From the sequence record NC_031043.1: a DNA stretch of 64,000 nt. One strand, given 5' to 3'. The number at the start of each line of letters is the position of its first letter. Position 1 is the stretch's first letter. Position numbers and translations under genes: made by a program. The notes under the pieces were generated by a model, which saw nothing but the letters and a program-made list of their open reading frames with translations, did not search any database and was not told where the DNA came from. Shown here in pieces: positions 1,379-26,265 of this stretch.

Positions 1379-1390
1379 GGGGTAATCTCT

Positions 1391-2389: not shown

Positions 2390-2398
2390 GGTGACATT

Positions 2399-3322: not shown

Positions 3323-3344
3323 CAGTAAAAAGGCGGTAATGTAA

Positions 3345-4796: not shown

Positions 4797-4808
4797 GGAG
4801 TAAATGAA

Positions 4809-5798: not shown

Positions 5799-5803
5799 GC
5801 ACC

Positions 5804-6712
5804 ATGTCAATCGTACTCAATTGGAAACAGCAGCCGGGTCAGGTGTTGGATTCTATCGAAATCTACCGCTATGCCAACGCACGTGCTACACCAAACCCAA
5901 ATGCTCTCGGTACCCCGCTTGCCACATTACCGGGCGACGCTACCACGTATGAGGATACCGCGGTCATTAGCAACCAAGTGTATCAGTATCGCGTAGTGTC
6001 GGTGAAGGGAACGGACAAGGTGATGGGCTTGCCCATCGTGCAGGGATACTTCCCGTATACTGGCCCTGGCCCTCAAGAGTTGTTACGCGGGGATTGGTGG
6101 ATAGGTTACTTCGGTACACTGACCAACCAAGAGTTTTTCCTGAACTCAGCAGACATGAATGGACGAGCTGGTTTTGGCGTGTGGAACCAAAACCCAGTTC
6201 TGTTCCATAAGTTCGCTTATAAAGGGAAAATTATATTCATTCCGAACAGCCCGACTATGATGGGTACCTCGTACAATAACCAATACCTCGCAGGACTCAT
6301 TTGGGGTATGTCTGGCGCGGGACGTTTTACGCCAAACGGCCTTTCCGCCGTGGACCAGAGGAAAACGGTAATCAAAGACGGCTTCGAATACATTATTCGC
6401 TTGCCAGAGCTGTATGATAGTGGGAGCTATAGCAGCAATTATAACTCGCTGGCATTCTTTGTTCAGGGCGAGTGGTACAACACGATGGTGCGTCTTTATC
6501 GTGGAGCACCGGCAACAATGCCCGGACGTTGGGGGGATTTGGATGTTGTGCCGGGGAACGCTGGTACTGATCAGGGTGTGGCGCTTTTCGCGCAGGCGTA
6601 CAATAACCAAGTCAGTATTTACTATCGCGGCAGCTACCCCGATTCAGTCAGCACAATAAACAACGCCAACTCCGCTACAGTGTATCACGTATTAGAGTTA
6701 ATCCTTAACTAA
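5804..6712 (+). CDS. Virion structural protein, cassette type C, copy 2
   Basis: Starts MSIVLNW..IEIYR; contains GPGPQELLRGDWWIGYFG; ends VLELILN. Confidence 0.75.
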   Translation: MSIVLNWKQQPGQVLDSIEIYRYANARATPNPNALGTPLATLPGDATTYEDTAVISNQVYQYRVVSVKGTDKVMGLPIVQGYFPYTGPGPQELLRGDWWIGYFGTLTNQEFFLNSADMNGRAGFGVWNQNPVLFHKFAYKGKIIFIPNSPTMMGTSYNNQYLAGLIWGMSGAGRFTPNGLSAVDQRKTVIKDGFEYIIRLPELYDSGSYSSNYNSLAFFVQGEWYNTMVRLYRGAPATMPGRWGDLDVVPGNAGTDQGVALFAQAYNNQVSIYYRGSYPDSVSTINNANSATVYHVLELILN

Positions 6713-6722
6713 GGAGGTAGAA

Positions 6723-8252: not shown

Positions 8253-8264
8253 GAGGACTTTCTC

Positions 8265-9245
8265 ATGGCCTTAAAACTGAAATGGAAGAACCCCAACAAA
8301 GGGGCAACCAGCGTAGAAATCTATCGCGGTGATACACCCGACGTGGATTTAACGACCCCGCTTGTCACCTTATCCTCAGGCGAGTTAGCATGGGTAGATA
8401 CCACTGCGTTGTTTGGCAGTACCTACTATTACGTCTGGGCGGTTAACACTGCTAACGACCGTGTGGTCAGTCGTCCTCAGAAAGTGGAAGTCGCAGACCG
8501 TAAAGGTCCCGGTCCAAATACGTTGCAAGCTGGTAATGAGTCTTACGGATATTTTGGTTCCGTGCCGAGCGCGGACTTCGTTAATAGCTCTACTGTATTA
8601 GCCGCATTAAAAACTTTGTCTGGTATCCCGGGCGGGACATCCTACCCAACGTGGTATAAGTTTATCCGGAACGGTAAAGTTCTGTTTGTGCCTAATACGA
8701 CCTTCGGTGACGTGTCTTGGATTAGTCTGTATAATGCAGGGGCGGTTTATGGTACGGACGATAACGGCGGTGTAAACTCGCCCAATAACGTGAATCAGAT
8801 GACCACCTTTGAGTTAAACGGTGACCTGTTCTTGGTACGTTTAGCTAAAGGCGTTCCCGAAAACATGGAGTGGGACGGCACAGCGGTTAATTTGAACACC
8901 CTACCCGCGGCGCAAGGTATCTATGCAGAATACGAAGACCTCATGTATCCGTTAATTACCCTTAGCCCTTTACGAAAACGGATGGTTACTGTTGATGCTG
9001 TAAACCCCACTTCAATAATTCCATCCGGGACTTACAGCAACCGCACATCATACGGCGTAGTTATGCAGGAAGCAGCTACCGTAGCTAACTCAGTACAGCG
9101 TGGTGGCGGCACGTATAATTACGACGCGCATTCCCGTGGGACTATAGAGTCATTCTCTTTACGAGGACGAACGAGTGCTTGCTGTTGGTGGCCTGTAATT
9201 GAATACATTGGTCGTGTCGGCGAAATAAACTTAGCGAATGCATGA
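8265..9245 (+). CDS. Virion structural protein, cassette type B, copy 3
   Basis: Starts MALKLKWKNPN..VEIYRG; GPGPNTLQAG..GYFG; WYKFIRNGKVLFVP. Confidence 0.75.
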   Translation: MALKLKWKNPNKGATSVEIYRGDTPDVDLTTPLVTLSSGELAWVDTTALFGSTYYYVWAVNTANDRVVSRPQKVEVADRKGPGPNTLQAGNESYGYFGSVPSADFVNSSTVLAALKTLSGIPGGTSYPTWYKFIRNGKVLFVPNTTFGDVSWISLYNAGAVYGTDDNGGVNSPNNVNQMTTFELNGDLFLVRLAKGVPENMEWDGTAVNLNTLPAAQGIYAEYEDLMYPLITLSPLRKRMVTVDAVNPTSIIPSGTYSNRTSYGVVMQEAATVANSVQRGGGTYNYDAHSRGTIESFSLRGRTSACCWWPVIEYIGRVGEINLANA

Positions 9246-9254
9246 GGATAGAAC

Positions 9255-10157
9255 ATGGGTATTACAATCGAGTGGGACAATCAAGCCGACCAGCAGTTGG
9301 ATGCGATTGAGGTTTATCGTTCAACATCACCTATCGATGAAAACAGTCCCGGCGTCCCCATTGCAACCTTAAGCGGCACAGACCGACAATACATCGATAA
9401 TGACGTGCGGGTTGGCAACACCTATTATTACCGAGTGGCCGTGAAGAAAGGAGAGAATCGCTCCTTTGGTGCTAATCAAACCCAGGGGTACTACTCCAAT
9501 CTAGGTCCTGGACCGCAGAAGGTTATCAGGGGGGATTGGGTACGAGGATTCTTTGGGGAGATTCCTCCGGTTGAATGGACAACGGTCACTGATGTTACCG
9601 ACAAGATTAAAGCGCAGTTAAAATCCTTAACGGGGATTACGCTTGCATCCAACACCGGTGCAATATGGTATAAATTTGTGTACAAAGGGAAAATCCTATT
9701 TCTTCCCAGTTTGCAGATGATTGTCAGTAATAACTGGCAGAACGGCTATAACGCCGGGTTTATTTACGGCGTGGACGGATTTGGCAGTACGCCAGACGGT
9801 GATGCAGGTGCCGTTAATCAGTTGACGGTGATTGAGGTCGCTGGGCAGCAATACATTGTCCGTGCGATTCGTCTTAGCGATAAACCAACTTCTCAGTATC
9901 TGACAGACCCGTTGGACTTCAATGACAGCGAATGGAAATCAACATACGCGCGTTTACGTACTGATAATGCAGCGTTGACTGACCCTACAATCCAACCGCG
10001 CTTCAATGACTTGGGTTCTATAGTTGGTACAGGTAGCGCGCACATGGCGGATGCTACCAGTCTAGCCACAGTATCGAACTCTACTCCTGAAACGCTAACC
10101 AAGGCACTTAAGACCAGCAGCATCAGCTGGATGGTTGTGCTTGAGTTAATACCGTAA
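9255..10157 (+). CDS. Virion structural protein, cassette type C, copy 3
   Basis: Starts MGITIEW..IEVYR; GPGPQKVIRGDWVRGFFG; ends VLELIP. Confidence 0.75.
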   Translation: MGITIEWDNQADQQLDAIEVYRSTSPIDENSPGVPIATLSGTDRQYIDNDVRVGNTYYYRVAVKKGENRSFGANQTQGYYSNLGPGPQKVIRGDWVRGFFGEIPPVEWTTVTDVTDKIKAQLKSLTGITLASNTGAIWYKFVYKGKILFLPSLQMIVSNNWQNGYNAGFIYGVDGFGSTPDGDAGAVNQLTVIEVAGQQYIVRAIRLSDKPTSQYLTDPLDFNDSEWKSTYARLRTDNAALTDPTIQPRFNDLGSIVGTGSAHMADATSLATVSNSTPETLTKALKTSSISWMVVLELIP

Positions 10158-12637: not shown

Positions 12638-13162
12638 CTACAGGTGTGACACCAATTTATTCCACTCAATTGGCTTTTGTGGAATGACCGATACGGTTCC
12701 CCGGGTCGGTGACCAGACCGTTAAGTTCGCCTGATTCCGCACATCAAAATGGAACCAGCTGATGTCGGTTTCTAAGAAGTGAATGAACGGGAACTCGTTC
12801 GGATTCTGCATGATGTAAGCACGAACTTCTTGCGAGCTGTAGTTCTGGAAGTTTAAGTCCATTGCCCCGCCGTATTTGTGCATGCTGTCAGACGCCGCGT
12901 AAAGCTCGTGAGCGCGTTCTTTCCAATTACCGCCCTTTGGCTTCTCTTGGTTAATAAAGAACTGTAGCGTGCGAATGGTGCGCTGTGTCATACCTTTAGA
13001 CGGCGAATTTGCAACGATAGGCCCGAACTTGTTACGTAACTGCTGTAACGTCACCATTACCAACGGACTAATCAAGTAAGCCGCATTAGCACCGCGCCGT
13101 GCAATGATATCCGGTGGGACTAATTCTTCGAGCTTAAACTGCTTGGGGTTCGGTTGGAACAT
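12638..13162 (-). CDS. Peptidase M15-like zinc peptidoglycan hydrolase
   Basis: SMHKYGGAMD matches the SxHxxGxAxD zinc motif and WFHFDVR matches WxHxDxR of M15 (LAS-family) peptidases; AGGAGG SD. Confidence 0.7.
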   Translation of the reverse strand: MFQPNPKQFKLEELVPPDIIARRGANAAYLISPLVMVTLQQLRNKFGPIVANSPSKGMTQRTIRTLQFFINQEKPKGGNWKERAHELYAASDSMHKYGGAMDLNFQNYSSQEVRAYIMQNPNEFPFIHFLETDISWFHFDVRNQANLTVWSPTRGTVSVIPQKPIEWNKLVSHL

Positions 13163-13826
13163 GGGTGCCTCCTGCAGGCGGTATTGGGTAACTCAGGAAT
13201 GAACGTTTAATGTTCAAGTATAAGACATGCGCCTGTCGACCGCTATACAGCTCAGACATGTCTTGTGGGGGAATAGCGACTTCCGGACGTTCACGCACGA
13301 ACTCATAATTGCAGTTCATGTTAAAGGTGTAAGCATCCGGTTTTAAATAGATGCAGCCTTTGTTGTTGTCGATATACGACTCGATACCAAAGTGCTTGAC
13401 CGCCAGATAGAACGACTGTCGGGTGAGCCACGCCACATTAAGCTGTTTCATGACGTACAGGAACATGCGGTCTGCAAACTCTTTATTAATGAAACGATTG
13501 AGCTTACCGCAAGCCGTGTCTTTGTAATGGCCGATAATCGGAATCTTCTGGTACAACAAATCATGCAGACAAGCCGCAGGACCGTAATCGCCTTCCGGTT
13601 TAAACAAGAACTGTAGCTGTGTAGGAATTGAAGCTAAATCGGTTACAAACCCTTTCGGGGCAACCAAATATAAAGGGGTGGTGGACACTAAGCCCGTTTC
13701 CTTTAAAATGACCCCGAGTGTTTTCGGGTCGTCCTCGTACAGACCAGCTAATGTAAAACCGAAGTTGAAGTCTTTGGTAAGAATAAACCAGTGGTCATCT
13801 AACCGTGTGTATTCAAACTTATCCAT
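13134..13826 (-). CDS. DUF1353 family protein
   Basis: APKGFVTDLASIP..YGPAACLHDLLY..ADRMF..M..L.V..FYLAVKHFG, the characteristic DUF1353 pattern. Start placed at MDKFEY (AAGGA SD). Confidence 0.7.
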   Translation of the reverse strand: MDKFEYTRLDDHWFILTKDFNFGFTLAGLYEDDPKTLGVILKETGLVSTTPLYLVAPKGFVTDLASIPTQLQFLFKPEGDYGPAACLHDLLYQKIPIIGHYKDTACGKLNRFINKEFADRMFLYVMKQLNVAWLTRQSFYLAVKHFGIESYIDNNKGCIYLKPDAYTFNMNCNYEFVRERPEVAIPPQDMSELYSGRQAHVLYLNIKRSFLSYPIPPAGGTHVPTEPQAV

Positions 13827-13858: not shown

Positions 13859-13892
13859 AAAAAAAGAACAAGGTGTGCCCCGAAGGGCACAC
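13859..13892 (-). terminator. Intrinsic terminator closing the radical SAM operon
   Basis: On the minus strand GTGTGCCC-TTCG-GGGCACAC (UUCG tetraloop, 13873-13892) is followed by CTTGTTCTTTTTT, 3 nt after the stop at 13895. Confidence 0.85.
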
Positions 13893-13894
13893 GC

Positions 13895-14551
13895 TTAGGC
13901 TTCTGCTACAAACTTCTCACGCATGCCTTTGAGTTTAGTGTACTCACTCTTCTCGGCCGCAATACGTGCGTCCCGTTTAAAGTCAGTCAACTTCTCATGC
14001 AGCGCGTTCGTACGGCTTACGATACCTGAATTCAACGCTTTCAAATCATCCAGCGTAAACTCCAGCTTTTCGTTATTCGCGTCCACCCAGTAACCCGGGC
14101 TTTCATCGACACTGAGATAACGAGCAATCGCAGCCAGCGCTTTTTCATCAGTCTGGTAAACACGCCCACCCAGCTCGATAGGTTGCACTACCGCTTCGCT
14201 GTATGCCTGATTTACCCACGCAATCAAATCGTGCAGCAGTGCGTAGCACTTGCCTGACGTTGAGATACGCTCTGCCTGACGGGTTGCCAAATCGATTTCC
14301 AGCACGTCTTTGATAAACGTGTGTGCTGACTTAAGCACGAACTTAATCTCCAGCGGAGACAGTCCCTGCTCTTTCAGCTGAGCGGAAAGCTCGTCGTCTT
14401 TCATCCCATCGAGTAAACGATAGTGTGCCAGACGTGACAGCGACGGGTTCCAACGACCATCACTCAGATGACCATCGACGAACTGACCGTGACGGTCGAC
14501 GAGTTTCCCGCTGTTCAGGAAACGATTTTTTATTTCGTCATTACTAAGCAT
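13895..14551 (-). CDS. DUF4376-like tail-fibre-associated protein
   Basis: The C-terminal half PIELGGRVYQTDEKA..YWVDANNEKLEFTLDDLKAL..K resembles the DUF4376 pattern (G..f..D..s..W..aDN..v.lt...l..l), a domain usually encoded beside tail-fibre genes. Confidence 0.55.
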   Translation of the reverse strand: MLSNDEIKNRFLNSGKLVDRHGQFVDGHLSDGRWNPSLSRLAHYRLLDGMKDDELSAQLKEQGLSPLEIKFVLKSAHTFIKDVLEIDLATRQAERISTSGKCYALLHDLIAWVNQAYSEAVVQPIELGGRVYQTDEKALAAIARYLSVDESPGYWVDANNEKLEFTLDDLKALNSGIVSRTNALHEKLTDFKRDARIAAEKSEYTKLKGMREKFVAEA

Positions 14552-15093
14552 TCAGTTTTCCCCACGATGCCGATATCTTTCAGCAGACCGTAGTCGAGGA
14601 ACTGATAGTCCTTGGCCAGGTCGTACTGCCAGATGAGGTTGTTAATACGTTGCTCTTCCGTAATCTCTTCGGCCGTATTGAACACCCCTACGTGTTCCCA
14701 AATCTCAAAGTAGTTACATTGGTCTTTACTGTTGCGGACAATAAGGACTTTATTGAGTGGGAACGACTGCGCCACTGCAACCAGAGAAGTTACCGCTTTA
14801 CCGTGATTGGTACGGTACAGCACTTTCAGTTTGCTTGGCGGGGTTTCCAGCATACGCTCTTCGAGACCGGTGTTACGCAGCTCAGCCTGTGCCAGTGAGT
14901 TGTGACCCTGCTCCACGCAGTCCAGTTCAATCAGCACATTCAGGGAATGACGCACCACCAGTCGTTTAACAACGTCGGTGTAGTTCTCAGCTTTACACAG
15001 CAGAGTTACATCGAACAGCTTGTGCTTCGTCAGGAACTGGTCCAGCAACGTTGTATCAAGCCTGGTAAAATTGTGAATCAGTAATGACTTCAT
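14530..15093 (-). CDS. Hypothetical accessory protein of the radical SAM operon
   Basis: Open frame overlapping both neighbours (translational coupling); start placed at MKSLLIH; no motif recognised. Confidence 0.55.
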   Translation of the reverse strand: MKSLLIHNFTRLDTTLLDQFLTKHKLFDVTLLCKAENYTDVVKRLVVRHSLNVLIELDCVEQGHNSLAQAELRNTGLEERMLETPPSKLKVLYRTNHGKAVTSLVAVAQSFPLNKVLIVRNSKDQCNYFEIWEHVGVFNTAEEITEEQRINNLIWQYDLAKDYQFLDYGLLKDIGIVGKTECLVMTK

Positions 15094-16417
15094 TGGTCTT
15101 TTCCTGTTTAACTGGAGCGTGCTTATGTTCAACTGCCGGAGCTTCGGGCTGAGCACGTGAAAGGGTTGGGAGTTTGTTTTGTGCGGATGCCTTCACACGG
15201 CACTCGTAGCAGTTACAGGACAGTTTCTCGAACTGGTCACCATAAGTGCCGAAACGACGTTCCCACCATTGGGCGGTCAGCAGTTTAGCCGTAGTCCAAC
15301 CACACTGGCGGCGCTCAGAGTGATAAGCTTTACGGGCTTCTTCTTCGCCATCGCCATTCTCATACGCAGCGGCCACGCAGGACGCACAGATGTGTTTGGC
15401 TGGGCAACCCAGACATGCATCCGGGTAAGACTGCCACTGGGTCTGTACTTCGTTCAGCAGTTTGCCACCGTCGGTGTTGATAATCTCACGACCAACCAGT
15501 TTGGCAATTGCTTGACGCGTAGTGACCGTTGACATGAAGCGGTTACAACCGTAGATGTTACGGTCAAAGCCGAGACAGGTCATGTGTACCGTGGTACCAC
15601 AGTGAGGACGCAGACGCTCTGGGTCGTAACGAATCTGATCGTCATGCAGAAGCTTTTCACGCCAGTCCGGTTTCCACAATTCATCGACGTTCATGCCACG
15701 TGGGGTAATGTGCCCCATTTCAGCGGTCGGGTCTTTGTGCAAATCTTTACCAATCCAGTATTCCAGCACTTCAATCATCTGGTTAGAGATGCCGAGCGCC
15801 ATATCACGTGGAATGATATCTTCGAAGACCATGTTACCGTAGATAGTACCACCGCCTGATTGGTCAATCAGGGACTTCATGGACGCCGCATAATGCTTAA
15901 GCGTGTCGTGAGTAAAGGTGGCTTTAATACCCAGGTCATTAATCTTCATGGACTTGAGGTAATGGTAGCCTTCCAGCGCCTTCTCATACGAGCCCTTACG
16001 GGAAGTCGTAAAGATACGGTGCTTATCGTGCGTTTCAGGCAGACCATCGATTGACACGCCGATAGACAGCTTCGGATACCAGCGCTCAATGATTGAACGG
16101 TTCAGCGGTTTATCAAACAGCGTGCCGTTCGTGGAGATGGAGAACATGTACGGACGATTGTCTCGTGCCGCCAGAATCTCTGCAGTTTCAAAGGCCGCAA
16201 TCAGCAGCTTCGGTTGCAGGAAAGGTTCACCACCGATAATGTCGATAATCGCGCCACCCAGGTTAGGTTTACCTTTGTCGCGGTCAAAACAGGCGTGGAT
16301 GAAATCCACCACATCTTCTACACGGTTATTACGTGGAAACTTGCGCTCGTAGCAGTAATCGCAGTCGAGGTTACACGACAAGTTCGTAACAATCTGATAC
16401 GTTACGTCCATAGCCAT
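15056..16417 (-). CDS. Radical SAM/SPASM peptide maturase (CXXX-repeat target type)
   Basis: CNLDCDYC (CX3CX2C), GGEPFL, ISTNGT, VSIDG..HDKHR, and C-terminal CX7CX9C plus CLGCPAKHICASC (CX2CX5CX2C) plus RQC, i.e. SPASM-type auxiliary cluster ligands. Confidence 0.9.
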   Translation of the reverse strand: MAMDVTYQIVTNLSCNLDCDYCYERKFPRNNRVEDVVDFIHACFDRDKGKPNLGGAIIDIIGGEPFLQPKLLIAAFETAEILAARDNRPYMFSISTNGTLFDKPLNRSIIERWYPKLSIGVSIDGLPETHDKHRIFTTSRKGSYEKALEGYHYLKSMKINDLGIKATFTHDTLKHYAASMKSLIDQSGGGTIYGNMVFEDIIPRDMALGISNQMIEVLEYWIGKDLHKDPTAEMGHITPRGMNVDELWKPDWREKLLHDDQIRYDPERLRPHCGTTVHMTCLGFDRNIYGCNRFMSTVTTRQAIAKLVGREIINTDGGKLLNEVQTQWQSYPDACLGCPAKHICASCVAAAYENGDGEEEARKAYHSERRQCGWTTAKLLTAQWWERRFGTYGDQFEKLSCNCYECRVKASAQNKLPTLSRAQPEAPAVEHKHAPVKQEKTNEVITDSQFYQA

Positions 16418-16430
16418 AACAGCATCCCCC

Positions 16431-17303
16431 TCAGGAGTTAAGATTCAGGTAATTGTGCAGATACTTGTAAGTCTCTACACCGATAATTTGTGCCATGGCG
16501 TTACAGCCTGAGTTGACGTAAAACTCTACGTTCTCATTGTGCTTAATATCGCCGTTCGGCTCGACCAGTTTCAACTGGCCACAGGCATTACAGTTTTCGT
16601 GGTCGAAGAACTTCTCGAGACGGAAGACTGTATTAATCCCATTCACCGAATTCAACTCACGCATCTGAGACTCTAACTGCTTATAGCCGTAGATAAAGTT
16701 CAGAACATGATCCTGATTGAGAGGTTTGGCCATCAGTTTGTCAAACGTCAGGGTCATTGCACCCAAACGCAAGTGATGCATTGCCGAATGTAAACGCAAC
16801 GTATCTTCAAACCAGCGTGGCTTACTGACTTGTTCGCGGGTCAGCACGCCCCACGTAACGACATTGTCCAGCTCAGACATCACTTCAAAAGCTTCTTGCG
16901 CCCCGTCTTCCACAAACGCCATCAGACTGCGGTCACCACCTTCGAAGGTATCGATGGAGACGATGATGCGGTCAAACGTTTTCAGGAACTCGAGTTGCGA
17001 GAGCTTAAGTTTACGGCCATTGGTAAACAGCAGGTGTTTTGCAGAAGGCACTTGCTCACGCGCCTGTCCTACGAAGTCGACTAACTTCTGATAGGCAAGC
17101 AGCGGTTCGCCACCAGTCCACAGGAATTCCTCGACAAGAGGATTTTCTTTTATAATGTCCACCATTGCCTCTTTGTGTTTTGTTTTCGAGACATCACCTT
17201 TCGCCATGTGAGCCGCTCCTCCACAGAAGGAGCAGTTCAGGTTACACTTCGACGTAAGCGCAATGTCAATCATGGTTGCAGACGACTTAGGGGTATCGTG
17301 CAT
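16431..17303 (-). CDS. Second radical SAM enzyme with a short, twitch-like C-terminus
   Basis: CNLNCSFC (CX3CX2C), WTGGEPLL, FTNG, IVSID; C-terminal CNAC..VEPNGDI..GC. Start is uncertain (MHDTP at 17303 or MIDIA at 17273). Confidence 0.85.
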   Translation of the reverse strand: MHDTPKSSATMIDIALTSKCNLNCSFCGGAAHMAKGDVSKTKHKEAMVDIIKENPLVEEFLWTGGEPLLAYQKLVDFVGQAREQVPSAKHLLFTNGRKLKLSQLEFLKTFDRIIVSIDTFEGGDRSLMAFVEDGAQEAFEVMSELDNVVTWGVLTREQVSKPRWFEDTLRLHSAMHHLRLGAMTLTFDKLMAKPLNQDHVLNFIYGYKQLESQMRELNSVNGINTVFRLEKFFDHENCNACGQLKLVEPNGDIKHNENVEFYVNSGCNAMAQIIGVETYKYLHNYLNLNS

Positions 17304-18228
17304 CAGGATTCTTTTTCCACAGATTTTCCATGAAAGTGAAAATCGGGTCTGTGAGTCGGACGTTCTCACCGGCCTTAATCAAGCGCTTATCATGGTACGC
17401 CTCAAGAATAGCATCCAGTACCTTATTCCGGTCGTTCAAACGATTCAGTTCACCCACGGTAACTTCACTGCGAGTAAAGGAACTGACCGCCTGTTGCTCT
17501 TCGGCCGACAGGAGTCCCGCTTCATTGACTTTACCAACCAAGAAGGTCAGTACACGATGTAAGTCAGCGGTGGTATTAGGTTGCTCACCGTATTCACACT
17601 GAACCAGATAATTCGTCCATGGCTTACGGATACGTTTGGTAATCTCGTATTCGTCCGTGATTGCGGTCCACTTCATATCACGGTGTTGCCATGTAAATTT
17701 GTAGGAGTAAGCCCACAAGTCAGCCAGACAATCAATGCCCAACTCTTCGTAACCTTCAACCGGATAGTAACGCTCCAGGTTGTGGTAATCGGCATCCGGC
17801 ACTTCTGCTGCTTCAACCAGCGTATAATAGAATGGGAAGGAAGACGGGTACTCCCAGCCCCACTGACGCTGAATCATCGGCACCATGCCGTTTTCTTTAA
17901 ACGAAGCGAACACCATCTCGATAGGCATGGAGTAGTTCAGTACCGCATCGGTAAAGAAATACTTGTCGTTCACCAGCTTGCCGAAATACTCATCCGTACC
18001 GTTTAAGATGTACAGGATTTTAATGTGCAGACCTTCCGGAGTCGTGAACTCTTCACGGACTTCCGCGTTGTCTAAAATATCACGAGGACGCAGACGAGGG
18101 AACTCGCCCGGGTTCATGCAGATTAAACGCAGACGGTCGTTGACGTGTGCATCAACGCTGTCAGGCAACCCGAGGTGAATCGGATAGTTAAAGTTGGTGC
18201 GGAAGGCAAGATGCGAATTATTCTTCAC
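17287..18228 (-). CDS. Hypothetical accessory protein of the radical SAM operon (about 313 aa)
   Basis: GTG at 18228 is preceded by TAAGGAG, which overlaps the stop of the 69-aa gene; the longer ORF-track start at 18318 overlaps that gene. No motif recognised. Confidence 0.65.
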   Translation of the reverse strand: MKNNSHLAFRTNFNYPIHLGLPDSVDAHVNDRLRLICMNPGEFPRLRPRDILDNAEVREEFTTPEGLHIKILYILNGTDEYFGKLVNDKYFFTDAVLNYSMPIEMVFASFKENGMVPMIQRQWGWEYPSSFPFYYTLVEAAEVPDADYHNLERYYPVEGYEELGIDCLADLWAYSYKFTWQHRDMKWTAITDEYEITKRIRKPWTNYLVQCEYGEQPNTTADLHRVLTFLVGKVNEAGLLSAEEQQAVSSFTRSEVTVGELNRLNDRNKVLDAILEAYHDKRLIKAGENVRLTDPIFTFMENLWKKNPDARYP

Positions 18229-18238
18229 GGAAAACTCC

Positions 18239-18448
18239 TTAGGAAGGCCAAGTGACTGCTTTTGCGCCACCGGACGATGACCAGCTACAGCTGCCATTGC
18301 AACGGTAAGATGCGGCATTAATGCCGTTTAAACGGTTAGCATTGTTCACGGTACCGCGCGTCGCAATATAGGTGTTCGCTTGGGCGGTAGTGATGTAACC
18401 TTCAATACGTGCGAGTTGTACGCCAACCTCATTAAGGGATACGGCCAT
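18239..18448 (-). CDS. Short CXXX-family paralogue P3 (69 aa, only 2 Cys)
   Basis: MAVSLNEV..NNANRLNGINAASYRCNGSCSW aligns with the N-termini of P1 and P2; TAAGGAG SD. Confidence 0.8.
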   Translation of the reverse strand: MAVSLNEVGVQLARIEGYITTAQANTYIATRGTVNNANRLNGINAASYRCNGSCSWSSSGGAKAVTWPS

Positions 18449-18457
18449 GAGAACTCC

Positions 18458-18856
18458 TTACGGTCCTGAGCACCCGGAGCAACCCGTACATGAACTGGAG
18501 CAAGAACCAGAACAACCACCCGAGCAACCACCAGAACAGCTCGTCGAACAAGTCCCTGTACATGTTCCCGTACAGCTACCAGAACAGCCACCTGCGCAGC
18601 CTCCCGTACAGCTGGAAGAACATGAAGAACCACAGGTACCTGAACAGGTACCGGTACACCCGCCCGAACATGCAGAACCACACGTCCAACTGCAGGTGCC
18701 GCCACAGTGATAATAGTTTGCGTCTTGACCACCAAAGCGGTCTACGTTGTTTGAGGTTTTTGACCCAATGTACGACTGTACACCGGCTTCGGTTTTAAGA
18801 GCGGCTGATTCAATGCTGTTAAGCTGTGTTTTTACTGCATTAAGTCCAACTGGCAT
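18458..18856 (-). CDS. CXXX-repeat protein P2 (radical SAM target candidate)
   Basis: 50-aa N-terminal part followed by an 82-aa Cys/Ser/Gly/Thr tail with 21 Cys (18 CXXX units, then CTG CSG CSGP); TAAGGAG SD. Confidence 0.9.
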   Translation of the reverse strand: MPVGLNAVKTQLNSIESAALKTEAGVQSYIGSKTSNNVDRFGGQDANYYHCGGTCSWTCGSACSGGCTGTCSGTCGSSCSSSCTGGCAGGCSGSCTGTCTGTCSTSCSGGCSGGCSGSCSSSCTGCSGCSGP

Positions 18857-18868
18857 TTTTTTATCTCC

Positions 18869-19255
18869 TTACATCGGACCGGAACAGGCAGAGCAGCCTG
18901 TGCAGGAACTTGAACAGGAGCCTGAGCAGCCTGCACCACACCCGCCAGAGCAAGATGAAGAACATGCCGAGCCGCAGCCACCGACACACGTCCCGGAACA
19001 CGTCCCTGCGCAAGAACCAGTACACGTACCAGAACACCCGCCAGAACAGTTACCCGAACAGCTCGAACAACCAGAGGTACAGCCTGCAGAACAAGTCCAA
19101 CTACAACTCCCGTTACAACGGACGTCGCCGGGACTCATTCCTCCTAAGAAATTTGAGTTATATGCTTTCGATGCCACCTGTGCATCCACCGATGGACCGG
19201 TAGCGATTTGCAGGCGGGCCATCCTCGCACTAACATCGTTGAGTTTAACGGCCAT
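18869..19255 (-). CDS. CXXX-repeat protein P1 (radical SAM target candidate)
   Basis: 46-aa N-terminal part followed by an 82-aa tail with 21 Cys in CXXX/CXX spacing; AAAGGAAG SD. Confidence 0.9.
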   Translation of the reverse strand: MAVKLNDVSARMARLQIATGPSVDAQVASKAYNSNFLGGMSPGDVRCNGSCSWTCSAGCTSGCSSCSGNCSGGCSGTCTGSCAGTCSGTCVGGCGSACSSSCSGGCGAGCSGSCSSSCTGCSACSGPM

Positions 19256-19269
19256 ATGCTTCCTTTAAA

Positions 19270-19310: not shown

Positions 19311-20510
19311 TTATTTGGTGCCTGCCGCAGACTGAACGTCGTCGCGTGTGGTCAGGTTGGCGTTGATGTGAACGTTTGCCTGTACAACACCACCCGTGTT
19401 CTTGTTCAGGTACTGGTCGTGCGGGTTTGCCGCCGACTGGTGGTTTGCCAAGTTCTGGTTAGTAGTCGCAAGGTTACGCTCAAGCGCAGCAATACGGTTT
19501 TCTAAGCCAGCGTTAGCATTACCCATATCCGCAATCTGCTGTTTCAGGTTAGCGATTTCCTGATTAGCAGCCGCCAGTCCTTGCTTCAGCGTGTTAAGCT
19601 GCTGAGACAATAACCCGACCTGCGTTTCCAGTACCAGAATCTCATCCATCAACTCAGCAATTTGCAACTGGGTTTTCTGGTAGTTCTGGTCAACCACGTT
19701 TAACTGGGTGTTCCACGTTGCAATCGAACTGACCAGTGCCGCAATCTTCTGCGCCAAATCAGTGTCGGTAGCATTCAGAGTACCAATGTCTTGCAGGACG
19801 GCGTTGATGTTGCTCTGCACGGTCTGGACAAGCGCACTGACTTCTGCGGTAGAGTACACGTCCAGTTGACCACGGGTCAGCTTGTGAACGTTACCTTCAG
19901 CATTACGGTGCTCTTCCAATGCATCGAGCATCTCTTGACGATACGCTTTAAGCATGTTTTGAATCTGTACCATTTCGGCACTGGCACCCAGACGGATGGC
20001 ATCGTTCAGCTTAGACAACAGCGTGACGATATATTCAAAACCAAAGAAGTCACCGAGGTCACGGAATGCCGGAGCACCCGCAAACTCATCCGGAATGTTA
20101 CGCAGTTCGTAGAAGTTGATAGTCGGGTCGTCTAAGTCCAACGACTCCACACACTGGATAATACTTTCTACGTTAGCGGCGTACGGCCCACCCACAATCT
20201 GCGCGCTGACAGTAATGTCGGATGGAACAGACGATTTGGTGATTACGATAGCGGTCGCAATCTCACGCCCACCCACCATTTTGGTTAATGACGGATGCAA
20301 CAGAATCGCTTCGTAGTTTGTTCCGCGTACCAACGGTTGGTTGGGAGCATTCACCGGAGCAATTCGAAGCGTATCAACAAAGAACGGACCTGTCGGGAAA
20401 GCAAACGCTCGGTTAATGGTTCCCGTTCCGAGTTTAATCGGATGAGAGACCGCGTTACCGGTGTTAGTTCCAAACAGGTCCAATGGGTACTGCATTATAA
20501 CCTTACTCAT
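19311..20510 (-). CDS. Short tail-fibre-like coiled-coil protein
   Basis: Shares the YPLDLFG..N..F.TGPFF..L N-terminal domain with the three large fibres; long heptad-rich segment; HQSAANPHDQY motif. Start placed at MSKVI (AAGGAG SD). Confidence 0.7.
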   Translation of the reverse strand: MSKVIMQYPLDLFGTNTGNAVSHPIKLGTGTINRAFAFPTGPFFVDTLRIAPVNAPNQPLVRGTNYEAILLHPSLTKMVGGREIATAIVITKSSVPSDITVSAQIVGGPYAANVESIIQCVESLDLDDPTINFYELRNIPDEFAGAPAFRDLGDFFGFEYIVTLLSKLNDAIRLGASAEMVQIQNMLKAYRQEMLDALEEHRNAEGNVHKLTRGQLDVYSTAEVSALVQTVQSNINAVLQDIGTLNATDTDLAQKIAALVSSIATWNTQLNVVDQNYQKTQLQIAELMDEILVLETQVGLLSQQLNTLKQGLAAANQEIANLKQQIADMGNANAGLENRIAALERNLATTNQNLANHQSAANPHDQYLNKNTGGVVQANVHINANLTTRDDVQSAAGTK

Positions 20511-20565: not shown

Positions 20566-23500
20566 TTACATGCTCAGTGAGGAATCATGAATCATAACAT
20601 CAAGGAGAGCAGCCCACTGTGCATCGTAATAGATGTCAATGTAACGGCCTCCCGCGAATGTTCTTTCTTCCGTCCAGTAAAAGACTGGGGCTTTAGTGGT
20701 ACTATCCGGCCGCAGTGCCAGAATGTAATCCTTTCCTGTTGGTACAGTTAAGGTATACAGACCGATACTACTCGGCCCCGGAACCGAGGCAGGGATTGCT
20801 GGGGTAGGGAGAATGACCGCAGTCATATCCAACGAAGACGATACGAGCTTGGTTGCCCCATCCTGTATCAATTCAAACGCGATATAACACGGTGTATTCC
20901 CTGGCGCCTCCTTCACAACCAAACACAAAGCGTTCACTTGGTTTAACAATAGACCGCCTGAGCCGATAGTAAAGGACTGCGTACCGCCCGACCCACGAGA
21001 TACCCCGTTGATATAAATATCGACTGAGTCATCCACCTGCACGTTCAACACCAGATTCAGCGATGTTGGCGTAAAGTAGGTCTTCGTTCCCCATACAACA
21101 CCTGCTGCCAACGGTGGGGCATTCACCTTAATCGCTGGTGCAGCTAATGGCGGTGTATAGGAGTTGGTCGACTGCAGAACTTGTGGCCAGAGTTTCTCCA
21201 CTTTATTCGTAGGTTGGAACCAGTTCCCATTACTTACCTGTGGCAGGGTAATACGCTGCACCGCATCAAATGCACCGGCTAACGCGTTCGCATTGTCTAA
21301 TGCGGCGGCGGTGCCGTATGCTTTCGATAGGTCTGCACCCGGACGGCCAAGGTTCCAGAATCGTGTTGCATTCTGAGACGCCGCACCATACCCGAATCGA
21401 CAACTACGAGCAAACGTCGGGGCAGCGACCGCTAAATCAACTTCCAGATATTTATACGTCGGGTCATTACGCAATTGCCCTAAAGACAGTGCGCGCTTCG
21501 CGGCGTTAATTGTCCGGATGTTGGTGTCACGGTCACCAGTAGTCGGCAGCTTCGCACGTTGTACCGCGATGTAAAGCTTATTACCGCGACGCTCTACGTA
21601 CGCATGAGCATACCACGTGTTCCAAGCCAACTGGTCAACCACGGACGTATCCACAACACCAACTGTACGAGCATTGGATTGCAGATAGTTTTCTTTCAGG
21701 ACCGTAATCGATTCTGCACCCAGATGACCTTCGATGGAATTACTGATAACCAAACACAACGTTTGTTCACGACTGGCCGCGTTCTCGTTGGCTTTTAAAG
21801 CAGCCACAACAATCGCAGTCGCGTCGTTATCGGTATCGTTGGAGGTAATTACCGTGTTGAAGACGTAATCCCCTACCAGCTCATCAGAGATGAACCCGAC
21901 AAACGTTGCGGTGTTCAGTGTACATTCCACGATGTCATCGGCTGCCACATACTTCCACGCCAGCAGTTCACTTTCGTTAGCCGGACGGGTTTCTGTAGTA
22001 GTTGCGTGACTGAAGCGATACCAGCTGTTATAGATATCTTGGAAGGACGGGAATGAGAACGTGTTAATCGTGCCCAAGTTCTCCATGTTCGAGTAAATGG
22101 ACTCGGTCAGACTCCCGCCCGGAAGGTAGCCGTGCGCATACGGGTTATCCGCGTGTGCCAGTAAAGCCCCTACCTGCCCCAAACGTTTCACACGGGTGAT
22201 GTTCACTTCGCCTAACGCGTTAAGTGTTGTCACCACGTAACCAATGTACAGCCGAGAGTCCGTATCCGCCAACTGTGTTTTGGATACCAGATACTCAGCA
22301 GCCCCGGTGGTTGCATTTAACTGCACGTGGAAATAGAACGTCTGGTTCTGATACCCCGATGGGAACAACGCCTTGAAGTCAAACTGGCTGACCGGGACGA
22401 TATGTTCTTCCATCTTCGCAAAGAAAGGAATTGCCTGGGTGATATACAACAACATCCCTTCTGCCAGCTGAGGACCAAACAGAATCACCTGACGAGAAGG
22501 ACCCGTTGTGAAGTTACGGGAGTTGTTTGAATACGCGGTGCCGCCGTAATACGCCCCATTCGAAATCCATTGCGCTGCCAGAATCTCGTTGGTTTCAGGT
22601 AAATGCACAATATCGTATTCACCGTACGCCGGGTTAGCGCTATCTCTCGATAGTGTCCAGTTCGCAAAGTTCAGGTCACAGGTAATCGTTGGGGTGTACA
22701 TCGTCCCACCGCCCACTGTAGGCATATACCCTAACGCATGCGTGCGAATAACCCAACCGTCTGAACGTTTGATTAACCGTAACTGCCAGTAGTCGCCCGT
22801 AACTGCAAAACCTGTGGTAGCAGCATTAACACGATCTTCTGTGGCGATGGTCGTTGTACCACTAAAGTTTAAGGTCAGCACCCCTGCCGCAAAGGTCATT
22901 GGGACACGGAACGTATAGTAGTACATGTAGTTGATACCGTCAGCCTCTGTTTGACAGAATGTTGCGGTAGCAATACAAAGGTTCACGCCCCCTAAGTCGA
23001 AGAGGTTCAGCCAAGTCACTTTCCATTTAGAGGCAGCTTCACTAAACTTCGGAATGCGGCTGACCAACATGGATTGGAAATCCGCCCATTGGGTCGTGCT
23101 CACCGTCACCCGGTCCGCGTGCACCGAGGCGTTACCGTTGATGTTTTTGTAAGCGCGAGTTTCCGCTTGGTAGAACGCGGTACCGTTAAGGTAATTATTC
23201 GTACCATCAAACACATAAGCGCAACGTGCTAACGTGTTATAGGTTGCCTCAGGTAAAGAGGTGCGGTCGTTACTTGGACCCCATCCGCCGTAACCCGGGA
23301 AGTTATAAGACCCCGCGGTATCGTACCCGGTCTGAATACAGTCGCCGGTGTTAGTGCGACGGAACAACGCTTTCTTTACACTGTTCCCTAACTGAATCAT
23401 CCCACGCATGCGATACTGGTAAACAGACCCATACGCACCCAACACAGCTGGCTCACCACCCATGCGACCTGTTAACGGATTATCCCAACGTAAAGCTTCG

Positions 23501-26265
23501 AACGGGGTTTTACCGCCTAAGCTAATACGTACGTTGTAGTTGTCACTGTTCGAGTTATCATTCCCGATGACATCGAAATACGTCTTCCGCACAACGTTAG
23601 AGTTAATTCGGTTGCCGTACAAAGAACCGTCTGAGTTATTGGTGTGATAATTCCCACCTTTATCAGTTACCCCATTCTCGTTCAACTCCATTGGCAAGAA
23701 GTCATCGTCTAACGTAACTGTTTTAGCAGTCAAGTCCAAAACATACGAAATCTGCCATTTGACGCCCCAAGCCGTTACTGAGTTAGAGATGTGAGTGCTA
23801 CAGTTAGCGCGTAAACGAATCTTCTTATCCTGTCGCGCATGTAACCAGTTACGACGTGCCGAGTGAACCACGTTCCGTGCACCTGTCCATTTCGCGTCCC
23901 CCGCAGGGGTCACGTAATACAAACTCGTGGTGTTTGGGTCCGTGCTATTAACAGCGTACGTCGCCAAGCGTCCCACGTTACCATCGGGGTACTTACCGGC
24001 CAGCGGGACTGATGCGAAGACCGTATCGGTTTTACTGAAATCGCTAAGTGGTATAACCCACAAACACGTGTACATCTCATTGCTATTCAGCAACGGTCTA
24101 ACTACATAAACGTCCTTATCAACGATATGGATATAATCCGCACCGGGTAAAGGAACAAAGTCGTATTGACCCGAAGCACGGGGCACCGGTGCGTAAGTAA
24201 CACGCACCACGTCAGTGTGTTTGGCTGCGTCAGCTGTCCCGTTAAAGAGAACCAGGTAGTACAGCGCGTCAGTACCGACAAAGATAGCAGCATCATCACC
24301 AGTAACGCACACACGCATCAGTTCAATACCCGGATACTTTTTAGCCATTCCTGCGGGCTTATACTGCACCGCGGTAGACAGATACGACGTATTTGAAAGA
24401 TTGTCCGTGCCCGGGTCGCAATCGCGATACCAGTAGAACACCCGCTGCGAATCCACATAGCCGTCCCAACCGTTGCGCAGAATATACAGACGCCCATCTT
24501 GCACAATCTGCATGGCATTGAAATCACCATCGATGAGAGATGAGGTTCCTTTATACTGCCCCGCTGTCGGGATAGGTAAGAACCCGGAGTCGCCGTAGTA
24601 CGTTCCGTTGGCCACCCAGCTTGGTAACAGGTTTAACGCTTTATCCTCTGCCGCATCGATTTTCAGTTTCAAATCGTAGCCCAGTTTAGACGTCGCTGCC
24701 TTATCAGTAGTGGCATCCAAAATGGTGTAGAGGTACGTTAAGCCTGAGACCGTCTCAGAAGCCGTAGGGACGTTTAGCAGATCACTGGCTACGTGACTGT
24801 GGACTTTCAACGCTTTGTTCGTCAGGGCGTCACGGAAGGGCTGTGTGACAGGCTTATCAGCAGGGGCGGTGTTATTCACGTTACCTAAGCCGAAAGATGC
24901 CTTCGTCAGGTTGATGGTCTGCGTTGCACCGAAAGCAGCACCGTTGATTTTGAAAGTCTCATCAACGTAGTTGTTCAGTTTCAGCAGTAAGTCATTAACG
25001 CCTTTCTGCGACAACGCGTAGTTTGGTGCAATTACCTCCACGTTATCTGTCAGACGGAACAGTCCTTCAACGGTATCCGTAGCCGATGGCGGTTGGGCTG
25101 CCATGTTCACCGGAGAAGTCGCTGAACCATTACCACCAATACGTACAGTCGGCGTAGAGGTAAAGGTAGGTTGTGCGTTCGAGTTCAATGGCGGATAAAG
25201 GTAAACCGTCACTGTCGATGGAGTAATAAGGAAAGCGCCGTTATAAATCGGACGGACGTCTTTCGCTCCAGCAGCACTTCCTTTCGACGGCACGAACAGC
25301 TCATCATAACCTGCCCGGGAAGAAACCCCGATACCGCGGCCATTGTTGTCACTGTCAGCGGCCAATTCAACAACCGCTTCGGTTCCGGTCAACAGGATTT
25401 TCCCTGCTGAGAACCGTAAGGCAGACTTACCATCTGCTGTGGCGTAGACCAGTTCGTCGTTGTTAATCGCACGGAAGCGTCCGAACACCTGACCCATGGT
25501 ATCATCAATCAACGTATCGACGACACGCTGAGAGATTTTGTTCTCTACCATAATCGCAACCAGCTGTGCTAACGTCTTACTGAACGCTTTCACGGCATTG
25601 GTTGCTGCCGCATCGACAGCTAACGCCCCAACGTCTGCTGGAGTGTATTTGTGCTGATGTGGGGTCTTGTGGTGCTGGAACAGTTTGTCGTCGTACATCT
25701 TTGCAGCAGAGCGTGACAGTGCTGTAATCGCTGCATCGATGTCCGTGTCCAGCTGACCTGCCTTCTCTTCAATCTTGAGACGGATGTTGTTGATAGCCGC
25801 TGCAATCGAATCGCGAGCGATGGCTTCATCCAAATCCTTCGGTGGGTCAACCGGTTCAATGGGAATCTGGTAGCGCATGAGCGCCGACCAGTCGGTATTA
25901 CGTGGCTCGGTAATAGCCGGGTTAACGAGGAACTTGCCGATATCCGACTCAGGGACGGAATAAGAAGAACCGAGTACCTGCAACTTATAGGTAATCTCGG
26001 TCTTCGTCAGCAGCATTATCCCGCCGAACAACTGAGCGCTTGCGGCGTGGGCACCGGCAGAGTAATACAACGCGAGGTAGTAGTCGATACCTTCGAATAG
26101 CAGGTTACCGTCAGTATCCTTAATCTCTAAGCCGTTACGGAAGAAGGGTGCCTCGAAAGGCACCACTAAGTTGAAACGGTTAGGATAAGTTAATGTACTG
26201 AGTGAACCCTCCGCGATGTTATCAGGGCTTTCACCCGTCAAATCTTCGGGATAATGTGTTCTCAT
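20566..26265 (-). CDS. Large tail fibre protein (1899 aa)
   Basis: Shared YPEDLTG..PFEAPFF N-domain, HKTPHQH and LGNVNNTAPADKPV fibre motifs, beta-rich body, and a C-terminal VDDSVDIYING carbohydrate-binding-like module. Confidence 0.75.
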   Translation of the reverse strand: MRTHYPEDLTGESPDNIAEGSLSTLTYPNRFNLVVPFEAPFFRNGLEIKDTDGNLLFEGIDYYLALYYSAGAHAASAQLFGGIMLLTKTEITYKLQVLGSSYSVPESDIGKFLVNPAITEPRNTDWSALMRYQIPIEPVDPPKDLDEAIARDSIAAAINNIRLKIEEKAGQLDTDIDAAITALSRSAAKMYDDKLFQHHKTPHQHKYTPADVGALAVDAAATNAVKAFSKTLAQLVAIMVENKISQRVVDTLIDDTMGQVFGRFRAINNDELVYATADGKSALRFSAGKILLTGTEAVVELAADSDNNGRGIGVSSRAGYDELFVPSKGSAAGAKDVRPIYNGAFLITPSTVTVYLYPPLNSNAQPTFTSTPTVRIGGNGSATSPVNMAAQPPSATDTVEGLFRLTDNVEVIAPNYALSQKGVNDLLLKLNNYVDETFKINGAAFGATQTINLTKASFGLGNVNNTAPADKPVTQPFRDALTNKALKVHSHVASDLLNVPTASETVSGLTYLYTILDATTDKAATSKLGYDLKLKIDAAEDKALNLLPSWVANGTYYGDSGFLPIPTAGQYKGTSSLIDGDFNAMQIVQDGRLYILRNGWDGYVDSQRVFYWYRDCDPGTDNLSNTSYLSTAVQYKPAGMAKKYPGIELMRVCVTGDDAAIFVGTDALYYLVLFNGTADAAKHTDVVRVTYAPVPRASGQYDFVPLPGADYIHIVDKDVYVVRPLLNSNEMYTCLWVIPLSDFSKTDTVFASVPLAGKYPDGNVGRLATYAVNSTDPNTTSLYYVTPAGDAKWTGARNVVHSARRNWLHARQDKKIRLRANCSTHISNSVTAWGVKWQISYVLDLTAKTVTLDDDFLPMELNENGVTDKGGNYHTNNSDGSLYGNRINSNVVRKTYFDVIGNDNSNSDNYNVRISLGGKTPFEALRWDNPLTGRMGGEPAVLGAYGSVYQYRMRGMIQLGNSVKKALFRRTNTGDCIQTGYDTAGSYNFPGYGGWGPSNDRTSLPEATYNTLARCAYVFDGTNNYLNGTAFYQAETRAYKNINGNASVHADRVTVSTTQWADFQSMLVSRIPKFSEAASKWKVTWLNLFDLGGVNLCIATATFCQTEADGINYMYYYTFRVPMTFAAGVLTLNFSGTTTIATEDRVNAATTGFAVTGDYWQLRLIKRSDGWVIRTHALGYMPTVGGGTMYTPTITCDLNFANWTLSRDSANPAYGEYDIVHLPETNEILAAQWISNGAYYGGTAYSNNSRNFTTGPSRQVILFGPQLAEGMLLYITQAIPFFAKMEEHIVPVSQFDFKALFPSGYQNQTFYFHVQLNATTGAAEYLVSKTQLADTDSRLYIGYVVTTLNALGEVNITRVKRLGQVGALLAHADNPYAHGYLPGGSLTESIYSNMENLGTINTFSFPSFQDIYNSWYRFSHATTTETRPANESELLAWKYVAADDIVECTLNTATFVGFISDELVGDYVFNTVITSNDTDNDATAIVVAALKANENAASREQTLCLVISNSIEGHLGAESITVLKENYLQSNARTVGVVDTSVVDQLAWNTWYAHAYVERRGNKLYIAVQRAKLPTTGDRDTNIRTINAAKRALSLGQLRNDPTYKYLEVDLAVAAPTFARSCRFGYGAASQNATRFWNLGRPGADLSKAYGTAAALDNANALAGAFDAVQRITLPQVSNGNWFQPTNKVEKLWPQVLQSTNSYTPPLAAPAIKVNAPPLAAGVVWGTKTYFTPTSLNLVLNVQVDDSVDIYINGVSRGSGGTQSFTIGSGGLLLNQVNALCLVVKEAPGNTPCYIAFELIQDGATKLVSSSLDMTAVILPTPAIPASVPGPSSIGLYTLTVPTGKDYILALRPDSTTKAPVFYWTEERTFAGGRYIDIYYDAQWAALLDVMIHDSSLSM

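Follow-up and report, generated by a model that had tools for sequence, protein, structure and literature searches.

Three small cysteine-rich genes in the tail-fibre module of phage Phobos

The stretch of DNA analysed here (64,000 nucleotides of sequence record NC_031043.1, hereafter the window) encodes, between positions 18,239 and 19,255, three small proteins, P1, P2 and P3, which raise the question of whether their N-terminal parts are leaders of ribosomally synthesised and post-translationally modified peptides (RiPPs) or lasting parts of a phage structural protein. The window was 100% identical to the genome of Erwinia phage vB_EamM_Phobos (KX397372.1; window position = record position - 124000), a jumbo myovirus with a 229.5-kb genome that belongs to the genus Derbicusvirus and to the SPN3US/phiEaH2/CR5 group. 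On balance, and with somewhat better than even confidence, we favour the second answer: P1 to P3 are probably anciently diverged paralogues of a small fibre-associated structural protein, in which a repeat of regularly spaced cysteines (the ladder) is modified by enzymes and the N-terminal module (N-module) is kept, rather than released peptides. We prefer this reading because the same ladder, with the same gene cassette, ends genuine tail fibres in two other loci (L032 and L040), because a further ladder protein (P0050) has a fibre anchor and two P3 variants (P0031 and P0037) carry C-terminal domains, because the phage cassettes contain no peptidase or exporter and the radical S-adenosylmethionine (SAM) enzyme gp163 lacks the leader-binding domain of its relative CteB, and because the counterpart of the upstream gene in phage SPN3US encodes a protein that is abundant in the tail and the enzymes do not belong to the virion.

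The three genes are tightly packed, and a strong Shine-Dalgarno sequence of the GGAG type stands ahead of each (Table 1). P1 matched the family phrog_6085 with an E-value of 5e-39 in the PHROGs search. The annotation of the region is inconsistent among almost all relatives, some of which put genes on the P strand. For instance, the GenBank record KX397372 places plus-strand open reading frames (ORFs) over P2 (gp167, 18447-18710) and P1 (gp168, 18768-19268), and in SPN3US (L003, 5651-5986) a wrong-frame ORF, gp166, is the sole annotation over the region, with P1 and P3 unannotated. Since the region is annotated differently or wrongly across relatives, proteomics databases lack P1 to P3. Taken at face value, the plus-strand ORFs of KX397372 would make gp167 and gp168 the real genes and P1 and P2 low-complexity artefacts, a notion to which we give practically no credence. 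The minus-strand frames are real genes because they are intact, with their Shine-Dalgarno sites, in every related locus examined, and because the ratio of nonsynonymous to synonymous substitutions (dN/dS) for P1 to P3 is 0-0.18 (0.06-0.18 for P1 alone) with saturated synonymous sites, as purifying selection would produce. Moreover, the N-modules are non-repetitive yet conserved, the annotations of relatives conflict, and coding sequence rich in TGY, AGY and GGN codons is expected to leave antisense frames open.

The genes lie inside a tail-fibre gene module, between gp169-gp172 and genes encoding DUF4376 and DUF1353 proteins. The giant fibre/baseplate proteins gp170-172 are situated upstream, beyond gp169, and all of these genes share one strand with P1 to P3 and the enzyme cassette. 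Synteny was followed through nine isolates of five genera, IMG/VR and metagenome loci, and 62 phage records searched by tblastn. The P trio, the phrog_8030 protein (gp165 in Phobos) and two radical-SAM enzymes were strictly syntenic in every related locus examined, and in the jumbo relatives trio and cassette were always flanked by the gene of the coiled-coil tail protein on one side and the DUF4376/DUF1353 genes on the other. A search for related loci with a narrower alignment returned the jumbo clade only.

Architecture of the N-module, the junction and the cysteine ladder

The N-modules of P1, P2 and P3 are 46-50 residues long. As had been proposed from the sequence, all three have a helix-like start of the form M-x-V-x-L-N-x-V, the pattern being approximate in P1 (M at 12, L at 15), and its hydrophobic positions are conserved in 27 orthologues from nine phages. 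Residues 3, 5, 8, 12 and 15 are strongly hydrophobic in 93-100% of these, and a weaker hydrophobic site is found near residue 19, which together give a heptad-like pattern with 3-4 spacing over about 2.5 heptads. The AlphaFold monomer of P3 has helices at residues 5-17 and 21-30, with a per-residue confidence (pLDDT) of 75-78 over the first 20 residues. Also near-invariant in the orthologues are an L or F, a G two residues on, and a Y ahead of the first cysteine; these belong to a near-invariant junction that closes the N-module, L/F-x-G-x5-Y-x-C-x-G-x-C-S-W. Beyond the junction, a cysteine occupies every fourth, occasionally every third, residue, with Ser, Gly and Thr between. Of the intervals between cysteines, 149 of 180 have a spacing of four in P1, as do 150 of 177 in P2.

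Across the loci examined, P1 had exactly 21 cysteines in all, P2 had 19-23 and P3 2-5. The 21 cysteines of P1 are constant across L002-L009, L012-L029 and the window despite 37-87% identity of the N-module and indels in the ladder, and a lone three-residue spacing at the fifth interval is also conserved. Such a fixed number suggests that length is constrained, as is typical of structural elements. In close pairs, the ladder changes less than the N-module. Regarding P3, its length is 68-69 amino acids in nine isolate loci, and variants in two jumbo-phage lineages carry a C-terminal extra domain of 70-140 amino acids (P0031, 210 amino acids in total; P0037, 147), for which tblastn found no match in 50,697 phage records. 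The N-modules form three orthologous types with 54-58% identity within a type and about 30% between types, so that the triplication into P1, P2 and P3 is older than the five genera. Judging by these sequences, three types would exceed what one shared recognition signal needs.

Ladders on tail fibres of other phages

An N-module profile search and a gp163-based search yielded variants in other phages, unrelated ones among them, whose tail-fibre modules contain the cassette and in which the ladder module is covalently part of bona fide fibres. In a P2-like prophage of Campylobacter pinnipediorum (L032), the tail fibre itself, a protein of 384 residues that matches PHROG tail families at E 1e-55, has a cysteine ladder at its C-terminal end, and the gene order is baseplate J, Tail_P2_I, tail fibre, gp165-like protein, two radical-SAM enzymes, DUF1353, sheath and tube. 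Likewise, the T7-like contig L040 encodes a collagen-type fibre of 432 residues (phrog_5073, E 6.5e-52) that ends in a P-type junction and a 15-cysteine ladder and is followed by a phrog_8030 protein and two radical-SAM enzymes. The third example, P0050 (contigs L010/L011), is composed of a fibre N-terminal anchor of about 65 residues, a P-type helix and junction, and an 18-cysteine ladder. Its anchor matches a tail-fibre PHROG and is 34-41% identical to the first 65 or so residues of a crAssphage LMMB 'tail protein' and of the collagen-like gp40 of Roseobacter phage CRP-125; two radical-SAM enzymes and a phrog_8030 protein adjoin the gene. The gene upstream of P0050 (L010, 105-629) matches tail-protein PHROGs, and by eye its C-terminus resembles a lectin/formylglycine-enzyme-type fold, as in some receptor-binding proteins.

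Two other phage lineages place the ladder on smaller proteins. In L036 and L039 it stands behind an 85-residue beta-rich domain, and in L034, L035 and L038 it is encoded by a small uncalled ORF directly after a T7-type fibre gene; in L034 (~5021-5248) and L038 (~4020-4253) this ORF, missed by the gene finder, comprises about 75 amino acids with 17 cysteines. The frame of the L034/L038 ORF overlaps the end of the fibre gene, and its ATG apparently lies at about the fibre stop codon. Throughout the phage loci described the ladder is C-terminal. The part ahead of it can be as short as 14 residues or as long as an entire fibre, up to about 370 residues, and these parts are not homologous to one another. 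The constant partners of the ladder are the phrog_8030 protein and the two radical-SAM enzymes, and neither the window nor any of the six phage-type cassettes that were examined contained a peptidase or exporter. Because it is covalently part of the fibre, the ladder of L032 and L040 should be carried by the virion, barring its cleavage from the fibre.

Period-four cysteines were also seen in bacterial proteins of about 670 residues from Candidatus Termititenax/Margulisiibacteriota (L041-L043), which contain dozens of them (one unbroken run has 63) beside a gp163-like radical-SAM enzyme and far exceed any RiPP precursor in size.

The proposed fibre-shaft motif

The original prediction had rested its case for a retained N-terminus on a motif, NAxxLxG...Y, held to recur in the shafts of phage fibres. 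The strings that it quoted are present, at residues 33-45 of P1, 36-49 of P2 and 36-48 of P3, and both they and the N-terminal helix are conserved throughout the related phage loci examined, so that chance does not account for them. Their kinship with fibres, and the homology of the N-terminus to fibre structures expected from it, found no support in hidden Markov model (HMM) and profile searches. With a threshold of E<=10, the N-modules matched nothing in Pfam and only their own family, phrog_6085, in PHROGs, and a profile of the P family against all PDB sequences gave no fibre. An N-module HMM run against all ORFs of the window recovered P1 to P3 only, the next best hit being the coiled coil of gp169 (E 0.15), and its score against the shaft of the P2-type fibre of L032 was insignificant. 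A regular expression for the motif, applied to the window proteome, was not enriched in the large fibre proteins of Phobos. Among 1.84 billion representative proteins, the N-module profile had 28 matches, essentially all of them small P-like proteins. Taken over Pfam, PHROGs, the PDB profile, the fibres of the window and these representative proteins, comparison of P1 to P3 with tail-fibre families thus returned their own family only. The long matches of the profile (P0044, P0052, P0053 and P0054) were set aside as low-complexity or repeat noise, one of them being a fungal-looking repeat protein. P0053 is a 327-residue repeat protein with a signal-peptide-like start and six matches to the helix part of the N-module, probably due to chance amplified by its repeats.

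The stretch is more aptly called a junction element, peculiar to ladder proteins, than a general shaft repeat. Its second half, L-x-G-x5-Y-x-C-x-x-x-C-S-W, recurs ahead of the ladder in the L040 fibre. Two further points of the prediction fared differently. It had remarked on the lack of a double-glycine cleavage context with a dedicated peptidase/transporter, and the annotation of the window indeed includes no RiPP-type peptidase or exporter. Its conclusion that the cysteine-rich tail stays attached, as in a mini-fibre, is the better-supported reading, although the support comes from the ladder-bearing fibres of relatives and not from the shaft motif that was given as the reason.

The enzyme cassette and its relation to known systems

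The first gene of the cassette, gp165, probably starts at a GTG at 18228, directly past the stop codon of P3, which its GGAG sequence overlaps. The alternatives, the annotated start at 18270 and the ATG of the longest ORF at 18318, are disfavoured, as the PHROG alignment and all homologues begin at the position of 18228. Its family, phrog_8030, had only 15 homologues in 5.8 billion proteins, and remote gp165-like homologues were identified in L010, L032, L034, L036, L038 and L040. No match was obtained in Pfam or NCBIfam, and the AlphaFold model (pLDDT 82) matched no PDB fold and, in BFVD, only its own orthologue; because a confident model matches no PDB fold, gp165 is not shown to be a protease or a RiPP recognition element (RRE).

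The two radical-SAM enzymes differ in kind. For gp164, the smaller one, BtrN is the nearest solved structure, and homology to the second radical-SAM enzyme of the Campylobacter prophage cassette extends over the full length. The radical-SAM/SPASM enzyme gp163 has its best NCBIfam matches to PapB and TIGR04115, at about 113 bits each and both under the cut-offs (TIGR04115: 113.7 vs 350). It contains the CX3CX2C motif (C15, C19, C22) and seven SPASM cysteines (C273, C291, C335, C338, C344, C347, C372), all invariant in 19 homologues. The nearest solved structure is CteB (5wgg), and the alignment begins at CteB residue 106 and gp163 residue 14, so that gp163 is without the N-terminal leader-recognition (RRE) domain of about 100 residues. 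Among 50,697 phage isolates, a gp163-type enzyme was found in the SPN3US-like group and one uncultured record only.

When compared to known systems, the closest in design is the bacterial CXXX-repeat system (TIGR04114/04115/04119), which has in common with the phage genes a cysteine at each fourth residue with small residues between, an adjacent SPASM radical-SAM enzyme and a C-terminal ladder. Against the TIGR04114 target model (cut-off 20 bits), P2 passes with 25.6 bits, P1 falls just under with 17.8 and P3 has no match. The bacterial loci L045 and L049 encode a fused TIGR04115+TIGR04119 maturase (506-513 bits), an ABC exporter and precursors of 65-90 residues with short leaders. In contrast, gp163 reaches 113 bits against a cut-off of 350, the phage cassette is without the TIGR04119 domain (none in gp163, gp164 or gp165 at E<=0.1) and without an ABC exporter, and it has a second small radical-SAM enzyme and the phrog_8030 protein instead. 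Moreover, the phage ladder is carried by fibre proteins or by a conserved 50-residue module rather than by a leader of about 25 residues, and the phage genes are situated inside tail-fibre operons. By family and by structure, gp163 finds its best matches in PapB (freyrasin, with Cys-X3-Asp ranthionine rings) and CteB (SCIFF). It has the CX3CX2C motif and the seven auxiliary-cluster cysteines as they do, and their substrates, too, have regularly spaced cysteines; the phage ladder, however, offers Ser, Gly and Thr between its cysteines and no Asp or Glu acceptors, and gp163 is without the N-terminal domain of CteB.

Two structural parallels were also considered. In metal-stapled fibre tips, of which the short tail fibre of T4 with its metal-binding receptor-binding domain is an example, a distal element is stabilised beyond ordinary packing and repetitive side chains run along the fibre end; the likeness to the ladder is an analogy only. 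The T4 domain is cited as ref. 68 in PMC2938197. No sequence or HMM relationship links such tips to P1 to P3 (Pfam, PHROGs, PDB profile), and the phage repeat differs in being cysteine-based and accompanied by two radical-SAM enzymes. The presence of two such enzymes beside a cysteine repeat implies covalent modification rather than metal coordination alone. The collagen-like fibres of T7-like marine phages, exemplified by gp40 of Roseobacter phage CRP-125, share their anchor domain with P0050 and the L040 fibre and have a repetitive Gly-rich shaft; unlike the ladder proteins, they have no cysteine ladder and no radical-SAM cassette, and P1 to P3 of Phobos are without that anchor. No published description of a tail-fibre system with a ladder and radical-SAM enzymes was found in the searchable literature, subscription-only literature lying outside the search.

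Proposed maturation and alternative explanations

In the scheme that we propose, P1 to P3, which appear to be co-transcribed with the fibre genes gp172-gp169, would be matured inside the infected cell by the products of the downstream genes gp165, gp163 and gp164, gp165 probably acting as the substrate-handling partner. By analogy with PapB and CteB, the chemistry is likely to consist of cysteine-derived thioether cross-links, which would stitch the Gly/Ser-rich ladder covalently and so make a rigid rod of it. The N-module is most likely retained and may serve oligomerisation or attachment to the fibre apparatus, perhaps also docking of the maturation enzymes; it is probably no cleaved leader. 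In the mass spectrometry of SPN3US virions, the counterpart of gp169 (SPN3US gp167, a gene of the same PHROG size and equivalent in synteny) was a tail protein and an abundant one, the radical-SAM enzyme gp163 was classed as non-virion, and gp164/165 were not listed (PMC10052503 supplement). SPN3US gp168-170, which count as tail proteins in that proteomics as well, form a paralogue family of likely tail fibre/baseplate proteins related to phiKZ gp131 (PMC5105663, PMC10052503).

A bolder form of this proposal, which we put forward tentatively and hold to be possible rather than probable, is that the radical-SAM-stitched ladder is a previously undescribed fibre element: a covalently cross-linked distal needle, made by a portable four-gene cassette common to jumbo myoviruses, P2-like prophages and T7-like podoviruses. 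The SPN3US-like jumbo phages would have it split into three mini-fibre chains (P1, P2 and P3) that assemble via the heptad helices at their N-termini and may form a heterotrimer on the coiled coil of gp169.

Several observations weigh against a fibre role. The N-modules match no fibre family by Pfam, PHROGs, PDB profile or window HMM, and the AlphaFold monomer of P3 is of low confidence, with an overall pLDDT of 60.7 and a predicted template modelling score (pTM) of 0.28, with no beta-rich fibre fold. The published SPN3US virion lists cover the neighbours and not the P genes, which that proteomics could not see, P1 and P3 having no annotation there and gp166 standing in the wrong frame. The closest named families of P2 and gp163 are RiPP systems, and RiPP clusters, too, typically feature amphipathic N-terminal helices and tandem arrays of paralogous precursors. 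Furthermore, the ladder of L034/L038 lies on an apparently separate product of about 75 amino acids, with about 14 residues ahead of it and a peptide-like look.

Some of these points are those that a classical RiPP would lead one to expect. The N-modules would then be leaders read by the enzymes, with gp165 as leader-binding partner, and cut by a host or unrecognised protease, and the cross-linked cores would be freed at lysis, for example as antimicrobial, metal-binding or anti-defence agents. The passing score of P2 with TIGR04114, the best matches of gp163 to PapB and TIGR04115, the small precursors with N-terminal leaders of the bacterial CXXX systems, the typical layout of three tandem precursors followed by modifying enzymes, the frequency of amphipathic helices in leaders and the small, apparently stand-alone ladder product of L034/L038 all agree with such an origin. 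We nevertheless judge it unlikely, at roughly one chance in a handful. The window and all phage cassettes examined lack a peptidase or exporter, and in L032 and L040 a complete tail fibre precedes the ladder. The parts ahead of the ladder, 14 to about 370 residues long and mutually non-homologous, therefore do not form one leader family, and a single conserved leader family ahead of a variable core was not observed among the ladder proteins. In close pairs it is the ladder that evolves more slowly than the N-module, the cysteine number of P1 stays at 21, P3 variants carry globular C-terminal domains, and gp163 scores far under the TIGR04115 cut-off in a cassette from which the TIGR04119 domain is absent.

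P1 to P3 might also keep their N-termini and yet stay outside the virion, the modified ladders acting as scaffolds, chaperones or metal/redox carriers during assembly of the large fibres, alongside the DUF1353 and DUF4376 proteins. In several phage types, neighbours of the cassette carry the annotation 'tail assembly chaperone', the counterparts of gp161-165 are absent or present only in traces in the SPN3US virion proteome, and a cysteine-rich, Gly/Ser-rich sequence could bind metals. Against this stands the covalent place of the ladder in the fibres of L032 and L040, which makes it virion-borne there unless it is cut off; the constant 21 cysteines and the three conserved paralogue types are hard to reconcile with a transient helper, and two radical-SAM enzymes represent a heavy investment for a chaperone. 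We regard such an assembly factor as improbable, and as somewhat less likely than the classical RiPP.

If fibre-associated structural proteins are indeed what P1 to P3 encode, the consequences reach beyond this locus. Where radical-SAM/SPASM enzymes are known to act on cysteine-rich peptides, they produce secreted natural products. In the present loci, targets and enzymes of this kind belong to tail-fibre operons, and some phages have the target fused to the fibre itself. A ladder that is cross-linked and particle-bound would amount to enzymatic covalent reinforcement of the phage adsorption organelle and, if true, to a new class of virion post-translational modification, with RiPP-type chemistry put to a new use on virion structural proteins. 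P1 to P3 are missing or mis-annotated in reference genomes, including that of the model phage SPN3US, and existing virion proteomics is therefore blind to them.

Genomic neighbourhood and other features of the window

The coordinates of P1 to P3 and of the neighbouring features are collected in Table 1. A scan for promoters and terminators found nothing between the fibre genes and the cassette, and the strong terminator-like hairpin adjacent to gp161 suggests that the fibre genes, P1 to P3 and the enzyme cassette form one transcription unit ending there. Downstream of the enzymes, the DUF4376 domain of gp161 also occurs after the cassette in L036 and L039, and the DUF1353 family of gp160 follows the cassette in the Campylobacter prophage too.

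Table 1. Features in and around the P1-P3 locus (window positions; aa, amino acids).
Feature	Position	Strand	Description	Basis
gp170	20566..26265	-	1899-aa fibre/baseplate-periphery protein	
gp169	19311..20510	-	Coiled-coil virion protein, immediately upstream of P1	phrog_2163
P1	18869..19255	-	128 aa; N-module residues 1-46 (19118-19255); junction and CXXX ladder residues 47-128 (18869-19117), 21 Cys	ORF and Shine-Dalgarno sequence
P2	18458..18856	-	132 aa; N-module residues 1-50 (18707-18856); junction and ladder 18458-18706, 21 Cys	ORF and Shine-Dalgarno sequence
P3	18239..18448	-	69 aa; N-module residues 1-49 (18302-18448); junction with 2 Cys, then short tail (18239-18301)	
gp165	17287..18228	-	About 313 aa, phrog_8030 accessory protein, found in all cassettes	E 8e-147, aligned from ORF residue 31
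gp164	16431..17303	-	Small radical-SAM enzyme, about 290 aa	Pfam Radical_SAM
gp163	15056..16417	-	Radical-SAM/SPASM enzyme, 453 aa	Pfam Radical_SAM
gp162	14530..15093	-	phrog_7988; syntenic in the jumbo clade	
gp161	13895..14551	-	DUF4376 protein; last gene of the co-oriented run	Pfam
Terminator-like hairpin	13873..13892	-	Directly after gp161; 8-bp stem with 6 GC pairs, T-rich tail	
gp160	13134..13826	-	DUF1353/phrog_1158, annotated 'tail assembly chaperone'	

Elsewhere in the window, positions 47-10157 of the plus strand are occupied by nine consecutive virion-protein genes, in which a unit of three genes (about 440-510, 330 and 300 amino acids) occurs three times over. Corresponding members of the units are 28-38% identical, and all nine are weakly related. 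By gene number, they are probably the counterparts of SPN3US genes 146-154, which are listed as encoding head proteins of paralogue family B.

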